From Adineta vaga (Eukaryota > Animalia > Rotifera), in assembly GCA_021613535.1 (NCBI GenBank), contig CP075492.1, positions 9,610,001-9,674,000 on the forward strand: a DNA stretch of 64,000 nucleotides. Reading direction: 5' to 3'. The translations under genes were made by a program, and so were the position numbers. Numbering within the stretch: position 1 is the stretch's first letter; each line of letters opens with the position of its first letter. The notes below the pieces were generated by a model. It was not told the origin of the DNA. It saw only the letters and a program-made list of their open reading frames with translations, and did not search any database. Below are positions 1 through 33,981 of the stretch, in pieces.

Positions 1-3000
1 ATATGTCACGAAATCTCACCTTTTGGTATTCAAATTTCATACCGAAATTTCAAACCATCAAATCCGATGCACCATCGGTCTCTGTTATTCGCATTGGTGC
101 AAGGTAAAATATCTTCCTCTAGAAGGAAATATCTATTCTCTTTCGATCTTTAGTCGCGATAATCCACCAATGATTAGACTTGAATCACGATTATTTGGAA
201 CATTAGAAAAAGTTGAATTTGAATTTTTTCGATTATCACTACCAATCTCATGTCATGATAAATTTGTGCCAAGGTAACGTTCATAATTGTTTTGTTTCTG
301 TTCATTGAAAAGTTTCATTTTGAAAAGATATGTCACACTTGAACGACGTCAAATTGCTTTGAATCATTATCTTGATTCTCAAGTGGAAAAAAATAATTTT
401 TTATTTCCACAAAAAACGTTTTCATCTCCTCCAAGAGTTTCGATTGAACATGCAGATCTTCCATTAGCTAATAAAATTGCTCGTGATCCGAATAATTTAC
501 TAGTTAAATTTCGTGATCAATCTTCACTTAGAAATAATACAGTAGCTTCACGAAAAAGTTCATCACCTGTTACTCCACGACGTAAACCACAACGAAGATC
601 ATCGATCAGTAAAATCAATAATCTTTTCCATTATTTTCTCAAAGAACAACAACCAGATAAACGAATAATAAAATCAAGTACAAATGGTTCAGAAACACCA
701 AATAGCAATCGACATTTACAACCACCGCCTGTATTAAAACCTCAATTAAAATCCATGGGAAGTAGTGAAGGACGAAGATCAATTGGAGAATCTGATGGAG
801 AACTTCTTGATCAACAAGCGAATAATTCAGAATATGATGATATACGAATTATTAATGAACATGTTCATGAATATTATTATGCAGTAAGAATTTTACCTGG
901 TCAAAATGCACGTTCTGTCTTTGTCGGTTGGGTAACATCACGATTTCGACCCATCTATCGACGAGATGATACATCAACTAATAAATTAACAAAACTAATT
1001 CGACGTTGTACATTGATTCAAACAGCAGATGATGGTTTAATTGTTGACAGTATTCAACGACAAGATGCTTACATGTTTTGTGCTCAAGATCTATTAGATA
1101 ACATGGCAGATAAAGAAAATATTGCAAGACGTGTTACTAATGGTTTATTAATTGGATGTTTATGTGATGTATCAACTGGACAATTAACATTCTATATTAA
1201 TGGAAAAGAATCTCCACAAAAACTTCAGGTTGAACCTAGTACAAAACTATATCCAGCTGTATTTGTTGAACCAACTGTAAAAGAAGTTTTACAATTTGAA
1301 TTAGGACGTATTAAAGTAAAAAATAATAAATAGTACATAGAATGAGAAATCATTTTTATTGTATTCTTCTCTTGTAGAGTTGTTTACCATTAACAGCAGC
1401 TTTATTTCCAAGTTTAAGTCGTGAAGAACGTTATATTCCACGATTACCATCTCGCTTACAATTACAATCATTAGTTCATTGTCATTGGTCACGTGTACCG
1501 AATACAAATATTCGTTGTCAACAATTGAAATTATCAGAAATTCGTGGATGGAGTGTCTTTGTTGAAGATCCTGGTAGACTAGGCTTGTCTATCTTCATGA
1601 TTCTTTGTTGTTAATTCTTTTCTTTTTTGCATAATTACATAGTTTATATGGAAGCAGTGTACATTCCTGAAGATGATCGTTGCACAGATATGTTAAGTTT
1701 AGTTGAAGATGAAGATACTCTAAGCTTTTGTTCGAATACATTGAGACTCTATAGTGCTATATGTGCTCAAGGTAATAATCGTGTTTCACATGAAATCTGT
1801 AAACTTGTCGACGAGAAACAATTGATGTATTGTGTAAAAAATGCTTGTAAGTTCAATGTAAAAAAACTTTATATCGTTAGAAGAATTTTCATCTTTTCCA
1901 ATTAGATATTTGTGGACCTATTCGAATTGGTATATATGAATTACTTATTGCATTACATTTTGAACCGTACATTAAAACAAGGTAATAACTATGAATTAAA
2001 TTACGTCGTTTCGATACATTTGTTTTCTTTGTTGTAGAAATTTAACATCAACAGAATTTATTATTCCTTTATCAAATTCACTTCGAAATAATACTGTATT
2101 AAGTTCATACAATTCACTTCAACAAAGACAAAAGTTTGCATCATCAACATATATACCAGCCATGGAACAATTCGTCACTATAAGACCTAAATTAGTCAAA
2201 GAAGAAGAGTATGTCGATAAGATTCAACACAGTTGTACTAAATCTTCTTCAATCATTTCAGTTTTAAAGTTGATCAAGAACGAAAATTACTTGTTCCACC
2301 ACCTTTCAATGTTTCACAGCTAAAAGAATATATTATGCATTCATTGACAGATGCGATTGAAAAAAGTTCTCGTCATCTTCGCGATCCTGCTGGTGGATCG
2401 TATGCGAATTGGCTCGTGTAAATAATTCAATTGAATACTTCTTATCTATTTAAAATGTCTCTCATTTAGACCAATACTTCAATTAGTTGATGCTCTCTTA
2501 GTTATGGGATCTCTTGGTATAATAGACTAGCAATTAGTATTTCAACAATATATTGATTTTTGTTTCATTGTAGAAGAAAATGATATTCAACAATTATTAC
2601 GTTTGATTGATCCGACATCATTTGGTTCTAAAACAGATCGGTTTAATGAAGGTTTACTTCAAATGAAACTTGATGAACCAGTTAAACTTCAATTATGTTA
2701 CGTTTTACAACATCTATGTCGATACCAATTACAATATCGTATTGAAGGTATCATGGCATTTTCTGAAGATTTCGTCGCAAGATTACAAGCGGTAAGTCAA
2801 TCGTCTCGGCTCTACGAATATAAGAGAGAAACATATTTTTGATTCAGGATCAAAAACGACGTTATCATACTTTACAAGAAGCAAATCTTTCACCTGCACT
2901 AATGGCAAAGAAAACTCGAGAATTTCGTTGTCCACCAAAAGATCAAGTAAATGACAAAGATGATTTATGTTTTTCTTCTTAAAATAAACACGAAACATTC

Positions 3001-6000
3001 TTGACTTCGATTAGATGCAAGCATTAATGAATTTTAAAGATCATTCAAATAACATGACTAATGAAGGAATACATGAAGAACTTAAATTTATGATGAAAAA
3101 TTTTCACTTCAATCTTCTTACTTTACAACATGTTATAGAGGTTCGTAAGAGAAAGTACATTTTCATTCAAAGATGTTTGAATCATTCTTAAAATAGGCAG
3201 AAGAAATATTCGATGAAAAACCAAATATAAATAAAATTGATTCAAATGAACAAATCGCATTATTTCCACGTCTATTAGAAACAGCAATACGATATTCATT
3301 GAAAAAGAAAGATGAAGAAAAGGAAGTTCGTAGTAAACAAATAACATACAAATCTGAAAGTAAGTTAATCAAGAGAAAAAAATGAAGAATTTGCATGTTT
3401 CATTTTTAGAAACATTATCTGAAGTAATTAAATCAACAGTTATTAAATGGGGTCGTGCAACACATATCAATGATCCAAATCTAATTCGAGAAATGTTCAA
3501 ATTAATTTATAATCAATATGATGGCATTGGAGAAGTATGATTATTTATTTAAAATATTAGTTTATTATTTGTTTCTTCTTGTATAGATTGCTCGAAGTCT
3601 TGAACGAACTTATGTTGTCAATGAATCGTCAACATCTGATATCTTATTATTAGTACGTAAATTGAGTATTATTCGTGCGCTTTTAACTGTTCAAATGGAT
3701 TCGGATGAAGAAGGTATTATGATCGCTTGTTTAAAGTAAGTTTTTTTTTATTCTCTTAACAGATGATTAATCAAAGAATGAATTTAGTGATATTATGGAT
3801 AATCGAGTATTTTATCAACATCCAGATCTCATGCGTTCACTTTGTGTACATGAAACAGTGATGGCTATCATGGTCAATCGTTTGAATAAAAGTAAACAGG
3901 AACAAACATCAATGAATGAACTTGATGGTTTGATACAAGCAAATGACAATGGTGAAAGTCAAGAGACGCATTCATCGAAAGTACAATGAAGGAATTCTTC
4001 TTTCTTTTGTTTCCCAAGAAAAATGTTGTTCATTGTTTAGGATGATAAAGTTGAACTTGTAACAACTTGTTGCAAATTTTTATCGTATTTTTCTCGAACA
4101 TCACGTCATAATCAACGAGCAATGTTTGAACATTTAAGTTATCTATTAGAAAATAGTTCAATGTTACTTTGTATAAGACTTAATGTATTAAAAGAGACTA
4201 GTGAATCAGTATTGTTCTTGTATTATAGCTCGTCCATCGCTTCGTGGTTCGGCACCATTGGATGTCGCTAGTGCTAGTGTTATGGATAATAATGAACTAG
4301 CATTAGCATTACGAGAATCACATTTAGAAAAGATTGCATCATATCTATCTCGGTGTGGTACAACAAGAAATGAAGAATTATTTCTACAAGGTTATCATGA
4401 TATTGGTTGGGATCCAGTTGATGGCGAACGGTCAGTTGATTTTGTAGAGAAATTTCACTTGATGTACTCTATTTCATTTGTTATTAATTAGATTTCTTGA
4501 TTTTTTGAAATTTTGTGTATGGGTTAATGGTAAGTTATATGAGAAGAAATTTTTTGTTTTTGAAATTGCATCGTTGATATTTATTCTAGGTGATACAGTC
4601 GAAGAAAATGCAGATTTAGTTGTACGTCTACTAATACGTCGTCCGGATTGTTTAGGTCCAGCATTGAGAGGTGAAGGTGGTGGCTTATTGAAAGCAATAC
4701 GAGAAGGTATTGCACAATCACTCTATATTGCACGACGACAAGATCCTGATGATCCAGTAGTTGAAGCTGCTTATCAAGAAATCATTGATGATGAAAGCAT
4801 GCATAATTTAAATGAAGAGTTGTAAGTGATTTACATTTAAATTGTAGATATTATCTAAATAGATAACTAAATATTTAATTTTAGTGATCGTCTTCAAGTT
4901 CGTTTACCCTATGTCGATGATGAAGAATATATTGATTTAGGTGCAGCAGAATTATCATTCTATGCTATTTTAGTGGAATTATTAGGTCGATGTGCACCAT
5001 CAGAAGAACTAATTCGATTAGGCAAACCAAATGCAGTTCGAGCCAAATCGATTCTTAAAAGTCTTGTTTCGATGCATGATCTTGAAGGAGTTCTTGGTCT
5101 ACGATTTCTTCTACCATGTAAATAAATATAAATTTATTCTATTCAAATTCGAATGCATTTTTTTCTTTTTATTCAAGTTGAAAATTCAATGCCACCTGGT
5201 CTTTTACCTTCGCATAAAATGTCTACAATACTCTTTCTAGAACGTGTTTATGGTATTCCAGATCAAGAAACATTCTTTAGTCTTATTGAAGATGCCTTTA
5301 TTCCTGATATTCGTGCAGCAACAATACTAGAAATGGTAATACAAACTTTCATTAGATTTTATTACTTTGATAAATTTTATTTTTTTTCAGGCTGTCGTAG
5401 CTGATAGTGACATGGCATTAGCATTAAATCGTTATCTATGTACGAATGTAATTCCATTAATGAAATCACATGCACACTATTTTGATGATTGTGATCACCA
5501 TTCAACACTTCTTCAATTGATATTACATCTTGTTTATCGTCTATCAAAAAGTCATTCATTAACCAAAAGTCAATTGGATATAATCTGTGATTTCTTACTC
5601 ATCTTCGCCAGGTATTACTTTTCGAACAAAGAATTGATAAGAAAAAACATTTTTCTTATTTAGTCAACTAAAACCATCAATGATGACACCATTATTAAAA
5701 CAATTAGTTCATGATGTACCGGCCTTAACTGAACAAACAATTGTACCATTGAGAGTATATTAATTAAGATTATTATTATTATTATTATTTTAAAAAATGA
5801 AATAAATAATTCGTTTAGATGTTAACACAATGGTATGAACGATGCTGTCGTTATTATACAATTGCAGCGACAGAAGAAGAAAAACGATTAACTATGTTGC
5901 TATTTCAAAAGATTTTTGATGCACTCGCATCACGAGTATGTATTTTAATCGAATGATTATTAGACGATTTTTTCTTCTGAATTCAATTTGTAATTCTGTA

Positions 6001-9000
6001 AAATGTTTGTTAGGATTATGATCCTGAATTGTTTGGCAAAGCACTTCCATGTCTAACTGGTAAGTTCATCACAGAAAATAGTACAATCTATTTACTCGTT
6101 TTTCTAATAGCTATTGGTAGTGCTCTATCACCGGACTATTCATATTCATCTAGTCAAGATGATCGTCTGGATGACGAACAAGAGAAATTGGAAATGAATC
6201 GTCCATATGAACCAAAACCAACTGATACATCAACGTAAGTTAAACAAATAAATTTAGATCGAAAAATAAATATCTCAATATGTATTTTGCTAGTATTTTA
6301 TTAATTCCGACGTTAGAAGAACTTGTTAGAGCTTATGCAGAAAGTGTTCATGATCAATGGTCATACACAAAAGTAATAGTGAAATAATAATTCTAATTTT
6401 AATATAAATAACTGTATGTAGATTGAACAAGGTTGGGTATATGGTGACAAAATCAATGCTAAATATCGTCAACATCCGAATTTAAAACCATATAAACTTC
6501 TTGATCGAAAGGTTTCGTCTATTGATATCTTGTCAATTTTTTATCTTGAATATTTTTTATCTAGGATATTGCAAAGTTAGAAGAATCTATTCGAGAAGCA
6601 TTAAAAGCAATTGAAAAACTACATTATCAATTAGAAAAGACAAGTACGGGTCTAACGCGTGTTCCGACAAAACCACTTCAACGAAAAAAAGGAAAAGTAA
6701 GATCTTACGCAGTTTATTGCTAATAATTTACTTTTCTCCGTAGGATAAAAACACGATGGATTACATTCCGAAAGCTATGGATTTTAGTAGTGTAACAATG
6801 AATCGAGAAATGCAGGTAAGAAACATTCAACAACAAATATTTACTCAGAATTGTTTCTAATTTTCATATAAGAAATGTATTTATCTATTTTCAGGATTTA
6901 TCCGAAGCATTAGCTCAAAATGCTCATGAAATTTGGGCTAAAGAATTGAAAACTCGTCTTGTTGCAATTGGTGATTAACTATATTTATTGTCTTCAAAAC
7001 AAATGATTTCTCTTTCTTCTTACTATTCTTCAGGTGGTGGTCTTCATTCTCGATTGGTACCATATGAATTATTAACAGATACAGAAAAACAAAAAGATCT
7101 GAAATTCTATCAAGATCTTGTCAAATATCTAAACATATCTGGGTATCGTGTTGTCAAGTAAAAGAAAATTTCATTTTTATATTTCTAAATCTGTCGATCC
7201 CTTCTCGTTTGTTTAGAACATCTGAAGACGAACATATTGATATAACACTAAATGCACATCATACGACATCAGCACCACCAATTCCTAATGAGAAACGTTT
7301 TGCTTATAGTTTATTAGAAAAACTACTTGAATATGTTGAACGAACATCATTCACAATGCAAAGTTATAAAGAAAGTTCAAAGTTTTCATTGCATGAAACA
7401 TATGCTTTAATAACCAAAGATGTGAAATTTTTCGGCAAAGTAAAAACAAATTCGATGAAATTATTCTAAAATGTGAAATCAATATTTTTAGGTTGTTTTA
7501 CCATTGATTGAAAAATATTTTCGAGCACATCGAGATTATTTCATTACACCGTCATCATTGAAAAGTGGTACTGGATATGCAACAGTTAAAGAAAAAGAAA
7601 TGTGCTGTAGTTTATTTTGTAAATTGGCTTATTTATTACGTGAAAAATTTATTGCATTTGGAAATTATGTTGGTATATCAGTTCGTTGTTTAAAAGTTCT
7701 TGTTCGAGCTATTGATGTTAGGTGTGTATACAAGCAGAAGAAAAAAGTCAAATTGATACATTGATATGTTTATTTTGTTTTCATAGTTCAGTGATGAAAA
7801 ATAGTCAAGAAATGGTTCGTGCTTCATTGTTACCACTATTCAATAATATTGCCGAAGATTTGAATCAAACTGTACGTAATTTAGAACAAAATCGATTCAG
7901 TAATATGAAAGGAACATTACATCGTGGTACAACTAGTTTGATATATTTACACATGGTTCTCTTACCTGTACTCTTTTCAATGTTGGATCATTTGGGAAAG
8001 AATAATTATGGTGTTGATGTATTTGGTAAGATATAAATACAGTTCATTTCGATGTATTATCATCAATGATATCTTTTTTTTTCATTTAGATAATGAACTT
8101 CAATTAGCTGGTTATAAAATTCTACATTCTCTATGGGTTATTGGTACACAGGGTGCATCTTTTGTTGATCGGTAAGTATTCAATGATTGATTTAGTATGA
8201 AATCTGTTCGCTTTCATTTCAAGACAATGGATTATTGATGAATTGAATCGTTATCGTCCATTACTTGGTGATTGTTTAAGTGCATTTGCTGCATGTTTTC
8301 CAGTAGCATTCTTTGAACCTGAATTCAATGCGAATAATAAAAATGCCACAGACGTTTCACTACTATCACCAGAAGCGAGCGGTAGACAAAATAATATCTT
8401 AATAACATAATTTAATTTTCGTTTTTGAATAGAGGTGATGATAAATATCTCACAGACAATTCCGCATCTACCGAAAATCATAACAGATATCGAAGAACAT
8501 GCGGTATCAAAAGTGAAATATGGATATGCACCTGATGTTGTCGAAGTTATTCTTCCATGTGTTTGTTCTTACCTATCATATTGGTGGTCAAATGGGCCAC
8601 AGAAAACAAAACAACCAATTGAGTATGTTAAGAGTTTCTCATTGCTCTTATTTTCATATTTATCATTTTGATTAGACCAAAAGTAACAAATGTAACAGCA
8701 AATCATATGAACTCCGTATTGGGTAGTGTATTGAAATTAATTAACAGTAATATCGATGCAGTTGAAGCTCCATGGATGAAACGTATTGCAGGTAATTGTT
8801 TATTTTAATAAACATATTTATTGCTACTTCTTTCTATTGTCATTTATTTTCCGAATAATTGAATAACTGAAATTTAATTAAAATCGTTTTTATCTATAGT
8901 CTATACTCAAGCAATTATTTTCAATTCATCAACGAAACTTCTTGAACCATATTTTGTACCATTATCCAGATGTTTAAAGGCAAAATGTGATGATATTTAT

Positions 9001-29443: not shown

Positions 29444-32400
29444 TTAAATTTGCCATTTTATATGTCCATAAGCTTGAAGACCAGATAATGTCAAATAACC
29501 AATCCATAGAAGAACAAAAAAGATCGAACAAAGATATTTGGGTATTGTTGGACCACCTGAAAAGAAAATATCAGGAGAAATATAATTTGACTATCATCTA
29601 TATTCTTCATACCTAATTCAGCTTTGCCAAAAACACCTAAATAACGACGAAGAATAAGGACAGTCATACCAAGTATACAACAAACAGAAAAGACAAGTAC
29701 GCTAAACGATAAATCGCCTGCTTTGACCGTAAATGGAAGATTCTAAAAAGCAAAAACAAATATATATATATACATAGAAGATTCTGCATGTTTTCATACC
29801 TTCGATTCCCAATAGATAGCAGCTACAAGCCAAGGAAGTCCTAAACCAAGAAATACATTGACACTATTCGATCCTGTAACATTTCCAATAGCATCATCAG
29901 CTGTTTTTGAATTTTTAGCTGCAATCATCGATGCAAATGTATCAGGTAATGATGTACCAAGAGCAACGAATGAAATAGCTGTTATACTATCTTTCAATCC
30001 AACAAGACAACCAAAAATAGCTGCAACATCTCCAACAATTGCCGTTAAGATAGCAATGAATAAAAGTGAAACAAAAAATGTTAACCAACCACCTGCAATT
30101 GATGTTGGAGGTACAAAAGCAAAAAGAATTTTCCAAAAAAATGCAAGTGTATGACCAACATAGTGACCAAATTTAGCTGTTTCTAAATCACCACCATTCA
30201 CATTCATAGCATCATGAAATTGTTGTCCCCAAGATGTTTTTGTCACACTTAATTTATCAATATCAACTTGAACAAGTGAAGCCATTTTATTTGCCATTGT
30301 TTTATAATCTATTTGAATATAAGAATTCAAATCAAATTTTAAATATTCAATATTTATGATATACCATCATCATTAATAATTGTAACAACTGTTTTAGGAT
30401 GTTTGCCTATTTGAGCACCACCAGTTGGATCATACAATTCTACTGCAAAACTTTCGTCTTTTTCTGCTTCAAGATCATCCATTATTGGTATAGCTATTAT
30501 TTTAGATATTTCACCATGCTCAAATACTAATTCATTATCAGCAGCTAGAATAAAATAAACAAATAGATAACGATGTAAAATTATCAATAGTAATCTATAT
30601 CTTCATCAATTCATCATGCCCGTCACGTGGAAAATAAACGAATTCGTCTATTTTATATTCACTCCACTGCTATCAACTGTCTACAATCTATGTTATGAAT
30701 ATCACATGAAACTTATGCTTAATCTTATTTGTTCTTCTATCAAAAAATAATTCACTTACGTTCATAATCTCTTGTTCCCACTGCATCAATATCTTTAGTT
30801 CGATATCGTACAGAAACTTTACCATCGGCACCATTAATACGTACAACCTTAATTTCAGCTTTACCGACACTTTCTTTCACGAGATTAATTGTTTCTTCGA
30901 ATTCAATAAAGCCCGGTTCTGAAAATAACGGAAGGATGAATAATTTCTTTTGATAAAATCATTTCCTACCATCATCATTAATAATTGTTACCAATGCAAC
31001 TGTTTTCGAACCTAATTTAGCATGCGCTTCTTCGCCTTCCGGTAAAGATAATTTCACAAAAAATGTTTCATCCGGCTCCCATTGATTATCATCGATAACG
31101 TGAATAGTTATTTTTTTCTCTTGTTGTCCACGTTCCATTTTAAATTCTTCCGCTAATTTCACATAATCTTCACCAGCTGTTGCTGTACCATCAATTGTGT
31201 CAAGTCTGTATAGAAGTGGAAAATACTTTTATACAAAAAGAAAAATTTCAATCAAATTCTATTAAACATGCAGTTTGATAATTTTGATGAAGTGAAATAG
31301 TGAAATAATTCATTCAAATACTGTGCAAAGAAAGATCTATGATTAAGCAAGTGTCAAAACATGCAATATGTGTTTTACTAAATGCATATGTTTTTAATCC
31401 TGTTGATTTTTTTTCACATTCAACACAGAGGGTTTCAAATTCGATAAAAGAAAACATTCAAAGACAAAACGGGAAAAGACACGAAACATCGATGGGACGT
31501 ACCGAAATGATATAGTAGAATTAGTAGAACCGTATCTGACGACTTCGACAGTTACTCGCTGCTCACGTTCCAGTACAGCATAACTCGATGAAGCAAACTC
31601 AAGAACTGCCACCTGTGGATCATCACCGAAATCTAGTTTCGATAGTGTTCCTTTTCGACCACCTAATTGTTCAATTGGTAGATTTCCATCCGATGGCTGA
31701 GGTTTGACAGCTCGTTGATAAATCTAAATGAATTAAGCTAAGCTTCTTTGTCTCTAACTAGCAGATAAACTATGATCAAATCTGTGATGATCAGGAAGAA
31801 GAAGAAGAAGTAGTAGTAGTAGTAATTGTAGAGAAAAATTTGCAGTGAAAGAAGTAATCTACGTATCTATGTATAAATATATATATATATATATATATGC
31901 AGTTTAATATATGTTGTGTCGTATTGTATCATAGCATAGACATGCATGAATGTATGTATCTATGAGCAAGCTACTTCAAAACACCTGAATCGAACATCAA
32001 CATTAACAGGACCATATCTTTTGACAATAATCACACACATTTGTTCACGTTCAAGCACAGCATATTGAGCAGCATTTAGTTCAATACGTGGTAAATGACT
32101 TGTTTCTGATAATGTTTCATCTATATCATCTTGCCAATCTGTTGGATTATGTTTGAGTAATCGTTCATGTATCTGTATTGTATTAATATAGATTTATGAA
32201 GAAGAAGAATTTCAATGAAATAAAGTAAACATTCGAAGGAAGAAAAAAAAAGGAAGAAGAGAAGGTTTTCCTTTACTATTTCTATTTACAAACCTCTTGA
32301 AGTTTGTCGGGAAGATTGACAAACAAAGATTTGCCACCGGTAAGCATACGTGCTCCTTGAATTCGATATTGCATACGTGATCGATGCATACTTTCACTTA

Positions 32401-33981
32401 ATTTTGCTGCAAATAATTGTGCTTTATCTTCTAATGATAAATTCGATGATTGACCAAGATCCTAATTAAATCCAAACGAAGAAGGAAAAAACTCTATTTG
32501 ATTTCATAAAAGATTAATGAGCATACACGTAAAAATTGCAGCAATTCATCTTTGCGAAAAGTTCGTACAGCACCAGTGGAATCGAGTTCAGGCGGAGCTG
32601 AAATATATGAATAGAATAAAACATATAATCAGTCTTAATTAAATATTGACGGAAAAAGACTTACTTAATATGAGTGTTTGTTCCTCTTCTTCCATGTCGA
32701 TTTTGCTTGAAGCATAAAAATTCTTTTCGGCCTGATAGTACATAAAAAAGAAAAAGAAAACTTGCTCATGTCTTCATTCTTTTTTTTTTCATTTTTTTTA
32801 TATGTATTCATTTACAAGAAATGCTAAGATGACAACCAATGGAAACATAAGAAATGTAATAACAGCTTCCCAAAGATCGACAACGTCTTTTGATACAACT
32901 GATAGAACGATGAACATCCATATATAAGCGAAGAAACCAAAAAATGATGTGATCTAAGAAAAGAAGATTTTCATCATTTGATATCTTAGAAGAAGAGAAA
33001 TATTTACCATAAAAACACTATATAATTTGATTCTTCTTGTTTCAGGCGCTTTTATTGCTGAAATGCATAGAGCACAAATCATAAGGAGATTGTAAGCAGC
33101 AGAACCAACAACTGAAATAGAATAATAACAATATTATTATTTATCTGTCAAATAAAAAAACAATTTAATAGATTCTTTTCAATACCCATATGATTGTTTA
33201 TAACAAAAAAAAAGCTTTGATAATCAGAAATAATTAATTATTACAATACAACAATTTCATTTAACCTTTTCATAAGATGTTTCAATAATAACAACAACAA
33301 AGCAAATAATTTCTATATAAAGGTTTTCTATCTCAATACGTAATCAAGAATAAACGAATTTCAAAAGGCTGAATTATAATATCATGACCTTAAGGACTAT
33401 TTCTCTATCCAAATAGTCTATCTATATATACGTATTTTAATGACATTTTTTCATTTGTAACAGAATTGATCCTATTAGTTGATAGTAAAAGAGGGGAAGA
33501 AAACAAGCGATATTATTTCTTACTTGTTCCAGGTCCAAGTTCTCCAGCTTCAAAACGATTGCCGACAATTTCAATAATTGATAGGAGAATTTCTGGTGAA
33601 CTCGAACCAAGTGCCATTAAAGTTAGATTAGCAACAGTATCGTTCCATAAACGAACTTCGACAGTTAAATATTTATCTTTTTGTGTTGGATCAGGATATT
33701 GAATTTTTCTTCTTCTTGATGTTATTGTTTCAATAGATGACATAAATATATCAGCAATAATCGCAATACCAAGAAAAAGATAGAGGAGAAATATGAAATA
33801 AAGTACTGCTCGTAATTGTATTGACATACATGCTTCAATACCTATGAAATTACAAGACGACAAGTTTTAATTAATATAGCATTTAAACTAATTATTTACC
33901 AAATGGTAAAATAAGACCACGAGCAGAGCATTTGAATTTTTGACAACTCCAGGTAGTATAATTAGCCAATTCAGTGGACAT
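29444..33981 (-). CDS. NCX: Sodium/calcium exchanger (SLC8/NCX/Calx), multi-exon
   Basis: Alpha-1 repeat WNDTVANLTLMALGSSSPEILLS; two Calx-beta domains (IDDNQWEPDETF, IINDDEPG; IMDDLEAEKDESF, IINDD); alpha-2 repeat FVALGTSLPDTFAS and NVTGSNSVNVFLGLG. ATG at 33981; stop TAA at 29446-29444. Confidence 0.96.
31503..31723 (-). other. NCX alternative exon B (221 nt; N-terminal half of CBD1)
   Basis: AG/GT bounded, phase 0 in and phase 2 out. Encodes IYQRAVKPQPSDGNLPIEQLGGRKGTLSKLDFGDDPQVAVLEFASSSYAVLEREQRVTVEVVRYGSTNSTISFR. Confidence 0.85.
31877..31898. repeat. (TA)n microsatellite between the NCX alternative exons
   Basis: Direct reading; preceded by (GAA)n(GTA)n tracts at ~31796-31823. Confidence 0.85.
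31985..32172 (-). other. NCX alternative exon A (188 nt; N-terminal half of CBD1)
   Basis: AG/GT bounded, phase 0 in and phase 2 out. Encodes IHERLLKHNPTDWQDDIDETLSETSHLPRIELNAAQYAVLEREQMCVIIVKRYGPVNVDVRFR. Confidence 0.85.

Follow-up and report, generated by a model that had tools for sequence, protein, structure and literature searches.

Sodium/calcium exchangers of the NCX (SLC8) family carry two Calx-beta domains, Ca2+-binding domain 1 (CBD1) and Ca2+-binding domain 2 (CBD2), in a large cytoplasmic loop, and the splice variation of the closest described systems falls within this loop. Both the mutually exclusive exon pair A/B of the mammalian genes and the difference between the CALX1.1 and CALX1.2 forms of Drosophila lie in CBD2, and CBD1 is stressed as highly conserved (PMC9820601). 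Here we analyse an NCX gene in a 64,000-nucleotide stretch of the bdelloid rotifer Adineta vaga (assembly GCA_021613535.1, contig CP075492.1, positions 9,610,001 to 9,674,000 of the forward strand), which we call the window and number from its first letter. Two neighbouring exons of this gene, which we name exon A and exon B, encode alternative versions of the N-terminal part of CBD1 and of the linker that leads into it. An earlier note on the window had drawn attention to the pair and had assigned the known NCX1/NCX3 and CALX splice variation to CBD2, in agreement with the review cited above.

The vertebrate NCX1 (SLC8A1)/NCX3 exons and the rotifer exons belong to the same gene family, and both are homologous tandem exons, mutually exclusive in vertebrates and probably so in rotifers, that encode part of a Calx-beta domain in the large cytoplasmic loop. 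However, the vertebrate exons lie in CBD2, where they alter Ca2+-coordinating positions and the number of CBD2 Ca2+ sites, whereas the rotifer exons cover part of CBD1 and the upstream linker and leave the Ca2+-ligand glutamate unchanged, which sets them apart from the CBD2 type. Because the rotifer duplication is specific to bdelloids, the two pairs are independent in origin. CALX of Drosophila is likewise an invertebrate NCX, and its splice forms differ in their Ca2+ regulation, but CALX1.1 and CALX1.2 differ by five residues in the FG loop of CBD2 (PMC9820601) and not by a swap of half of CBD1. In arthropods (Panulirus, Lepeophtheirus and Centruroides) RefSeq isoforms vary at the junction between KL[KR]E and VY, which is where the rotifer alternative exons begin, although the arthropod cassettes are short optional linker inserts and the CBD1 core is invariant; such isoforms include P0247/P0284, P0266/P0292-P0297 and P0218/P0319, from spiny lobster, salmon louse and scorpion. 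Splice variation seems to recur at this junction. A further parallel comes from Caenorhabditis elegans, in which clusters of homologous tandem exons of length 3n+2 (two nucleotides more than a multiple of three) are used singly, and inclusion of both or neither leads to premature stops (PMC4165533). In that species nonsense-mediated decay removes the products, and 14 of 19 mutually exclusive clusters with non-3n exons rely on it at least partly (PMC4165533), whereas for the rotifer gene such a dependence is only presumed.

Results

Splice sites and reading frame define a 14-exon NCX (SLC8-type) gene on the minus strand of the window (Table 1). Exon by exon, its Pfam domains run in the order Na_Ca_ex, Na_Ca_ex_C, Calx-beta, Calx-beta and Na_Ca_ex (E 2e-8 and 6e-20 for Na_Ca_ex), so that two membrane repeats flank a large loop with two Calx-beta domains, which is the architecture of NCX/SLC8 proteins, and the full-length relatives of its product found by database search are annotated as sodium/calcium exchangers. 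The exon-A form of our gene model is letter for letter the A. vaga protein I4U23_013809 (P0001, 'hypothetical protein') of 820 aa. Exon A and exon B both have an AG acceptor and a GT donor and share the same entry and exit phases, and their peptides are 30% identical (22 of 73 aligned positions, BLASTP E 2e-11), with the identity clustered in YAVLEREQ and RYG...F. A search of the animal's own genome (100.8 Mb in six contigs) found the two exon copies at this locus and a matching pair in the ohnolog on C6, and no others.

The reading frame separates the possible combinations of the two exons. In the full 14-exon model the frame is open for 820 aa with exon A alone and for 831 aa with exon B alone, while the two together bring the first stop at codon 399 and the omission of both brings it at codon 318. 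The earlier note had claimed that exactly one of the two exons must be used, and our models agree. Its coordinates and lengths for both exons are exact and the translations agree with ours; for the flanks it named the right exons but was one base off in position, the upstream exon ending at 32294 and the downstream exon starting at 31205. The introns around the pair, which it had described as longer than usual, measure 121, 261 and 297 nt compared with mostly 51-84 nt elsewhere in the gene, which also has introns of 215 and 412 nt.

Table 1. Features of the NCX gene and of its alternative exons, in window positions
Feature	Positions	Strand	Remarks
NCX (SLC8-type Na+/Ca2+ exchanger) coding region	29444..33981	-	14 coding exons per isoform; 15 exon positions when A and B are both counted
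Upstream constitutive exon	32294..32461	-	ends LPDKLQE; unusual donor GTTTGT; pN/pS ~0.05
Exon A	31985..32172	-	188 nt; phase 0 in, phase 2 out; exon of the NCBI gene model
Conserved block, 5' end of the A-B intron	31925..31984	-	TGCATG at 31946-31941; C3/C6 alignment
Exon B	31503..31723	-	221 nt; phase 0 in, phase 2 out; missing from the NCBI A. vaga model
Intron from exon B to downstream exon	31206..31502	-	297 nt; TGCATG at 31365-31360 and 31272-31267
Downstream constitutive exon	30970..31205	-	rest of CBD1 (Calx-beta 44-119), from LDTIDGTATAGEDY to IINDD; Pfam E 2e-16

Several lines of evidence place the alternative segment in CBD1. It corresponds to positions 1-43 of the first Calx-beta domain (Pfam), exon B itself matching profile positions 1-38, and over its whole length the downstream exon can be aligned with CBD1 of Drosophila CALX (3RB5 residues 47-120) as well as with that of NCX1. 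For whole-domain alignment and modelling we used pieces carrying the A segment of A. vaga (P0001) and the B segment of Adineta ricciae (P0151). Both align to the joint CBD1-CBD2 region (CBD12) of CALX and NCX1 with E ~1e-20, the closest solved homologue by sequence being CALX CBD1 (3RB5 and 3RB7; E 9e-21). AlphaFold models of the two versions of CBD1 reach a mean predicted local distance difference test score (pLDDT) of 93.0 with the A segment and 93.3 with the B segment and have an identical strand pattern. In a Foldseek search the top structure for the A-segment model was 2DPK (NCX1 CBD1, 'the primary Ca2+ sensor') with a TM score of 0.85, followed by CALX CBD1. The alternative segment occupies model residues 1-43, which comprise the end of the linker, strands A, A' and B and most of strand C. 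The domain is also the first Calx-beta domain after the YRI helix, matches a solved CBD1 best and has the acidic end IINDD. On these grounds the placement of the exon pair in the N-terminal half of CBD1 by the earlier note is supported. A search of the Protein Data Bank with the bare exon peptides gave chance matches only (LAC1 and a designed repeat protein). CBD2 is encoded by the exons at 30918-30760 and 30544-30365, neither of which is duplicated.

Glutamate E385 of NCX1 ligates Ca2, Ca3 and Ca4 in CBD12 (PMC9820601). The equivalent glutamate of the rotifer protein is nearly invariant over 50 sequences and is found in both exons, and the remaining Ca2+ ligands are all encoded by the shared downstream exon. 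Since the two exons agree in this residue, there is no indication that Ca2+ coordination is altered directly.

Comparison of eight loci from five bdelloid species, namely A. vaga C3 (the copy in the window) and C6, two loci of A. ricciae, one of Adineta steineri, one of Rotaria socialis and two of Rotaria sordida, reveals that the exon order upstream-A-B-downstream and the AG and GT splice sites are kept in all of them. The A. vaga ohnolog on C6 carries the pair in the identical order, and the features that mark A and B as tandem duplicates in the window, that is, adjacency, homology, equal phases and canonical splice sites, recur at all eight loci. A-type exons are open in every case (188, 212, 185, 212, 194, 179, 227 and 185 nt) and fall into six length classes that are all 3n+2 and differ by multiples of three. 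B-type exons of 221 or 224 nt are intact in seven of the eight loci, the exception being that of A. vaga C6 with 223 nt, and 14 more intact B-type exon open reading frames were found in environmental bdelloid DNA. A look for both exons in rotifer relatives, which the earlier note had proposed as a check, thus found the pair at each locus. A search with P0001 also recovered numerous NCX proteins of bdelloids, from A. ricciae, A. steineri, R. sordida, R. socialis, Rotaria magnacalcarata and two further Rotaria, and these database gene models variously contain one segment, of the A type or of the B type, or fuse the two implausibly. The six loci outside A. vaga were taken from the genomic sequences behind these models. 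The fused models are 855-894 aa long or partial (P0152, P0160, P0164, P0172, P0176, P0177, P0186, P0188, P0206 and P0207), and they look like annotation errors that arose, through ad hoc splice sites, from an unrecognised mutually exclusive pair.

Selection on the two exons was measured as the ratio of nonsynonymous to synonymous differences per site (pN/pS), from Nei-Gojobori counts over three independent pairs of alternative exons with one-sided Fisher tests, and for the flanking exons by pooling seven within-lineage pairs. For exon B the ratio is 0.34 as a whole (p = 2e-8), 0.39 in the linker (p = 5e-5) and 0.24 in the core (p = 5e-5). For exon A it is 0.43 in the core (p = 3e-4) and 1.05, not below 1, in the linker, and the flanking exons give ~0.04-0.05. 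Both exon copies are kept by selection, since the ratios of exon B and of the A core are significantly below 1 and the frame and splice sites have been held from Adineta to Rotaria. The per-exon selection check suggested earlier, run here as pN/pS, therefore finds exon B and the A core constrained and the A linker at about 1. The two linkers also differ in chemistry across the eight loci. The linker of exon A, which precedes the codons for CBD1 strands A-C, is variable yet acidic, with a net charge of -1 to -7, and shifts in length by whole codons only, whereas that of exon B, which precedes the codons for the same strands, is conserved and about neutral and keeps a GGRK-x-T/S motif. The contrast between an acidic and a basic linker that had been noticed in the window extends in this form to all eight loci.

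Three transcript contigs of other bdelloids each carry one of the two exons. The contig L008 (Logan, SRR14765263) contains an intronless coding sequence of 832 aa in which LPDKLQE is followed by a B-type segment and RLDTIDG, and the contig L009 (JGI) contains an intronless coding sequence that joins the upstream exon, an A-type segment and the downstream exon. A third contig, L010 (SRR27710271), starts in the intron before a B-type exon, which is then spliced to all downstream exons. Because all genomic loci have more than 12 introns, these three contigs must derive from spliced RNA. The exon used is B alone in L008 and L010 and A alone in L009, all from bdelloids other than A. vaga, and none of the three contigs carries both exons. 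A word search with exon B alone returned only genomic exon open reading frames of other bdelloids and no junction-spanning fragments of A. vaga.

The origin of the pair was examined in a tree of the 37-residue alternative part, which was rooted at the midpoint and offers only a few columns (37). In this tree the A clade (support 91/88) and the B clade (96/87) are sisters (96/84) to the exclusion of the nearest outgroup; the next branch is a group of sequences at 53-56% identity, and other phyla lie further out. On a metagenome scaffold of this nearest non-bdelloid group (L020) each NCX gene has a single exon of the A/B kind, and since the next exon follows about 55 nt downstream of the exon for the N-terminal part of CBD1 there is no room for a second copy. 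The scaffold carries, within positions 1-8700, two complete tandem NCX genes about 5 kb apart with very short introns, and a PI3/PI4-kinase/FATC gene lies downstream of them on the opposite strand. Two similar exon open reading frames on it were considered as a mutually exclusive pair and rejected, as they belong to the two tandem whole genes. Each of the two A. vaga ohnolog lineages has both exon types, as does Rotaria, so that the duplication predates those splits. The sister relation of the A and B clades without the outgroup, together with the single exon at the outgroup locus, bears out the independent, lineage-specific origin that the earlier note had suggested.

Outside bdelloids, RefSeq isoforms were compared in ten NCX clusters (oyster, scallops, abalone, Lingula, spiny lobster, salmon louse, scorpions, sea urchin and acorn worm), among which Macrobrachium is represented by a single sequence that allows no comparison. 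In these clusters the CBD1 core is never swapped, and the variation concerns a loop on the upstream side of the YRI helix or, among arthropods, the short cassettes described above. In full-text searches of the literature we came across no paper that describes an exon pair in CBD1 or mutually exclusive exons in bdelloids.

Some features of the introns suggest how one exon might be chosen over the other. All three donors around the pair are non-consensus and are conserved in the eight loci. The upstream exon has GTT[TAC]GTA, exon A has GTG[TC][TC]T and exon B has GTA[CGT]GTC, the donor of exon A (GTGTTT) being the weakest. Directly past exon A, a block of some 50 nt can be aligned between the ohnologs C3 and C6, unlike the rest of the introns. 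Within this block the hexamer TGCATG occurs at +30 to +39 past exon A in six of the eight loci. Three loci (R. socialis, R. sordida c and A. steineri) have GCATG at -14 relative to the acceptor of exon B, and among them are the two, R. socialis and R. sordida c, that lack TGCATG after exon A. In all eight loci GCATG or TGCATG is present in the intron that follows exon B, and neither occurs in the intron before exon A at any of them. In the window all three TGCATG on the strand of the gene sit in the two introns that flank exon B, against about 0.23 expected (Poisson p = 0.002). Over most of the eight loci the (U)GCAUG motifs are positionally conserved, with 16 observed against 2.4 expected, although the loci are not independent. 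(U)GCAUG is the recognition element of Rbfox proteins in other animals. The conserved non-consensus donors, the intron block after exon A and the recurrent (U)GCAUG indicate that exon choice is probably regulated, and a factor of the Rbfox type may read the motifs.

No special device is required for mutual exclusion as such, given that each of the two exons has a length of 3n+2. Steric hindrance as the mechanism was set aside, the intron between A and B being 214-262 nt long and having AG dinucleotides near the acceptor of exon B. In addition, CATGCATG elements are self-complementary and could pair, as in docking/selector RNA structures. The A-B intron of the window also contains, at 31800-31905 on the minus strand, a (TA) run of about 12 units with adjoining ACT and TCT trinucleotide runs, none of which is conserved in the C6 copy.

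Discussion

We consider it likely, with a probability of about 0.78, that exon A and exon B are a genuine mutually exclusive pair which arose by tandem exon duplication in bdelloids and from which a regulated choice would produce two NCX isoforms. Comparative genomics and the transcripts of related species lend good support to a lineage-specific, conserved and mutually exclusive pair in CBD1. The duplication would have taken place in the bdelloid lineage, earlier than the divergence of Adineta from Rotaria and earlier than that of the ohnologs, and each mRNA would take either exon A or exon B. The resulting isoforms are predicted to differ in the linker between the helix that follows the exchanger inhibitory peptide (XIP) region and CBD1 and in strands A, A' and B and most of strand C, and to be the same in the Ca2+-ligand glutamate of the A-B loop and in the remaining Ca2+ ligands. 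At the least, exclusivity would be enforced by the reading frame, as inclusion or skipping of both exons should lead to early stops, and mRNAs of these kinds would presumably be removed by nonsense-mediated decay.

A number of observations weigh against this interpretation. The single A. vaga protein model in the database is built with exon A, and the A and B contigs come from different bdelloids, so that alternative use within one gene of one animal is deduced from the co-occurrence of both exons in genomes. At the C6 ohnolog, exon B (L002:1501-1723; G000:C6, ~6385351-6385573) has lost one base after ...EREQR, past which it still reads TIEVIRYGFTNSVIHF in the shifted frame. The A. vaga exon A forms a long branch in the tree, and the linker of exon A is neutral at the amino-acid level. 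Finally, a search of the genome with the Pfam profile Fox-1_C gave no match, which is uninformative as this tail is poorly conserved.

Two of these observations would be expected if exon B were an unused relic in A. vaga, only the exon-A protein being made and exon B being conserved for some other reason or slowly decaying. The choice of exon A in the one database model and the frameshift in the C6 copy are consistent with such a relic. Nevertheless, we regard it as unlikely, since exon B is the better conserved of the two exons, is intact with its AG and GT sites in seven of eight loci and in the environmental reading frames, and is spliced into the transcripts of other bdelloids. A. ricciae moreover retains an intact exon B of the C6 type, and given this intact counterpart the deletion in A. 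vaga reflects either an assembly error or the recent loss of the B isoform from one ohnolog.

The opposite view, in which exon B provides the main functional isoform and exon A is a marginal, fast-evolving duplicate that is rare or non-productive, appears similarly improbable. The ratio of about 1 in the A linker and the higher ratio of the A core compared with the B core (0.43 against 0.24) fit this view, as do the weak donor of exon A and the leucine that A. vaga exon A has in place of the nearly invariant phenylalanine of the EF motif. However, A-type exons are open in all eight loci, with six length classes that differ by multiples of three, and the core of exon A is significantly constrained. 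The intronless transcript L009 uses an A-type exon, CBD1 models as confidently with the A segment as with the B segment, and a conserved intron element lies directly downstream of exon A. It is very improbable that the exons are not exclusive at all and that a frame-restoring cryptic donor, such as the GT 10 nt past the exon A donor of A. vaga C3 that would make exon A 3n, yields a protein with one and a half N-terminal segments of CBD1, as in database models of 879-894 aa, because the in-frame A + B fusions predicted for several genes of A. steineri, A. ricciae and Rotaria use ad hoc junctions that vary by species in a manner typical of ab initio prediction, no transcript contig joins the two exons, the product would double strands A-C of a beta-sandwich, and canonical exon ends, not cryptic sites, are conserved at all loci.

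What the two isoforms would mean for the exchanger is a matter of more cautious argument. A retuning of Ca2+ sensing by such a switch is plausible. With the ligand residue unchanged, effects on coupling, dynamics or modification are more to be expected than effects on coordination, and a functional effect would be more likely to concern the coupling of CBD1 to its neighbours, or its modification, than Ca2+ ligation. The GGRK-x-T/S motif specific to exon B is a candidate site for a basophilic kinase. We advance more tentatively, as a proposal somewhat short of even odds, the combined picture of a regulated CBD1 isoform switch that is independent of the vertebrate switch in CBD2, is present in both ohnologs, is older than the Adineta-Rotaria split, may be steered by a GCAUG code of the Rbfox type and makes the isoforms differ in Ca2+ regulation or kinase control.

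Exon B, which is conserved and coding, is missing from the current annotation of A. vaga. More generally, the pair bears on the current view of NCX regulation, in which a near-invariant CBD1 senses Ca2+ and a spliced CBD2 tunes the response. The rotifer exons would represent a second, independent tandem exon duplication giving a regulatory switch in the NCX family. They also constitute a natural, selected pair of CBD1 halves in which all Ca2+ ligands are kept while three strands and the entry linker are changed, and this makes them a ready-made test of what the non-ligand parts of CBD1 and its tether contribute to activation, inactivation and coupling to the membrane domain.

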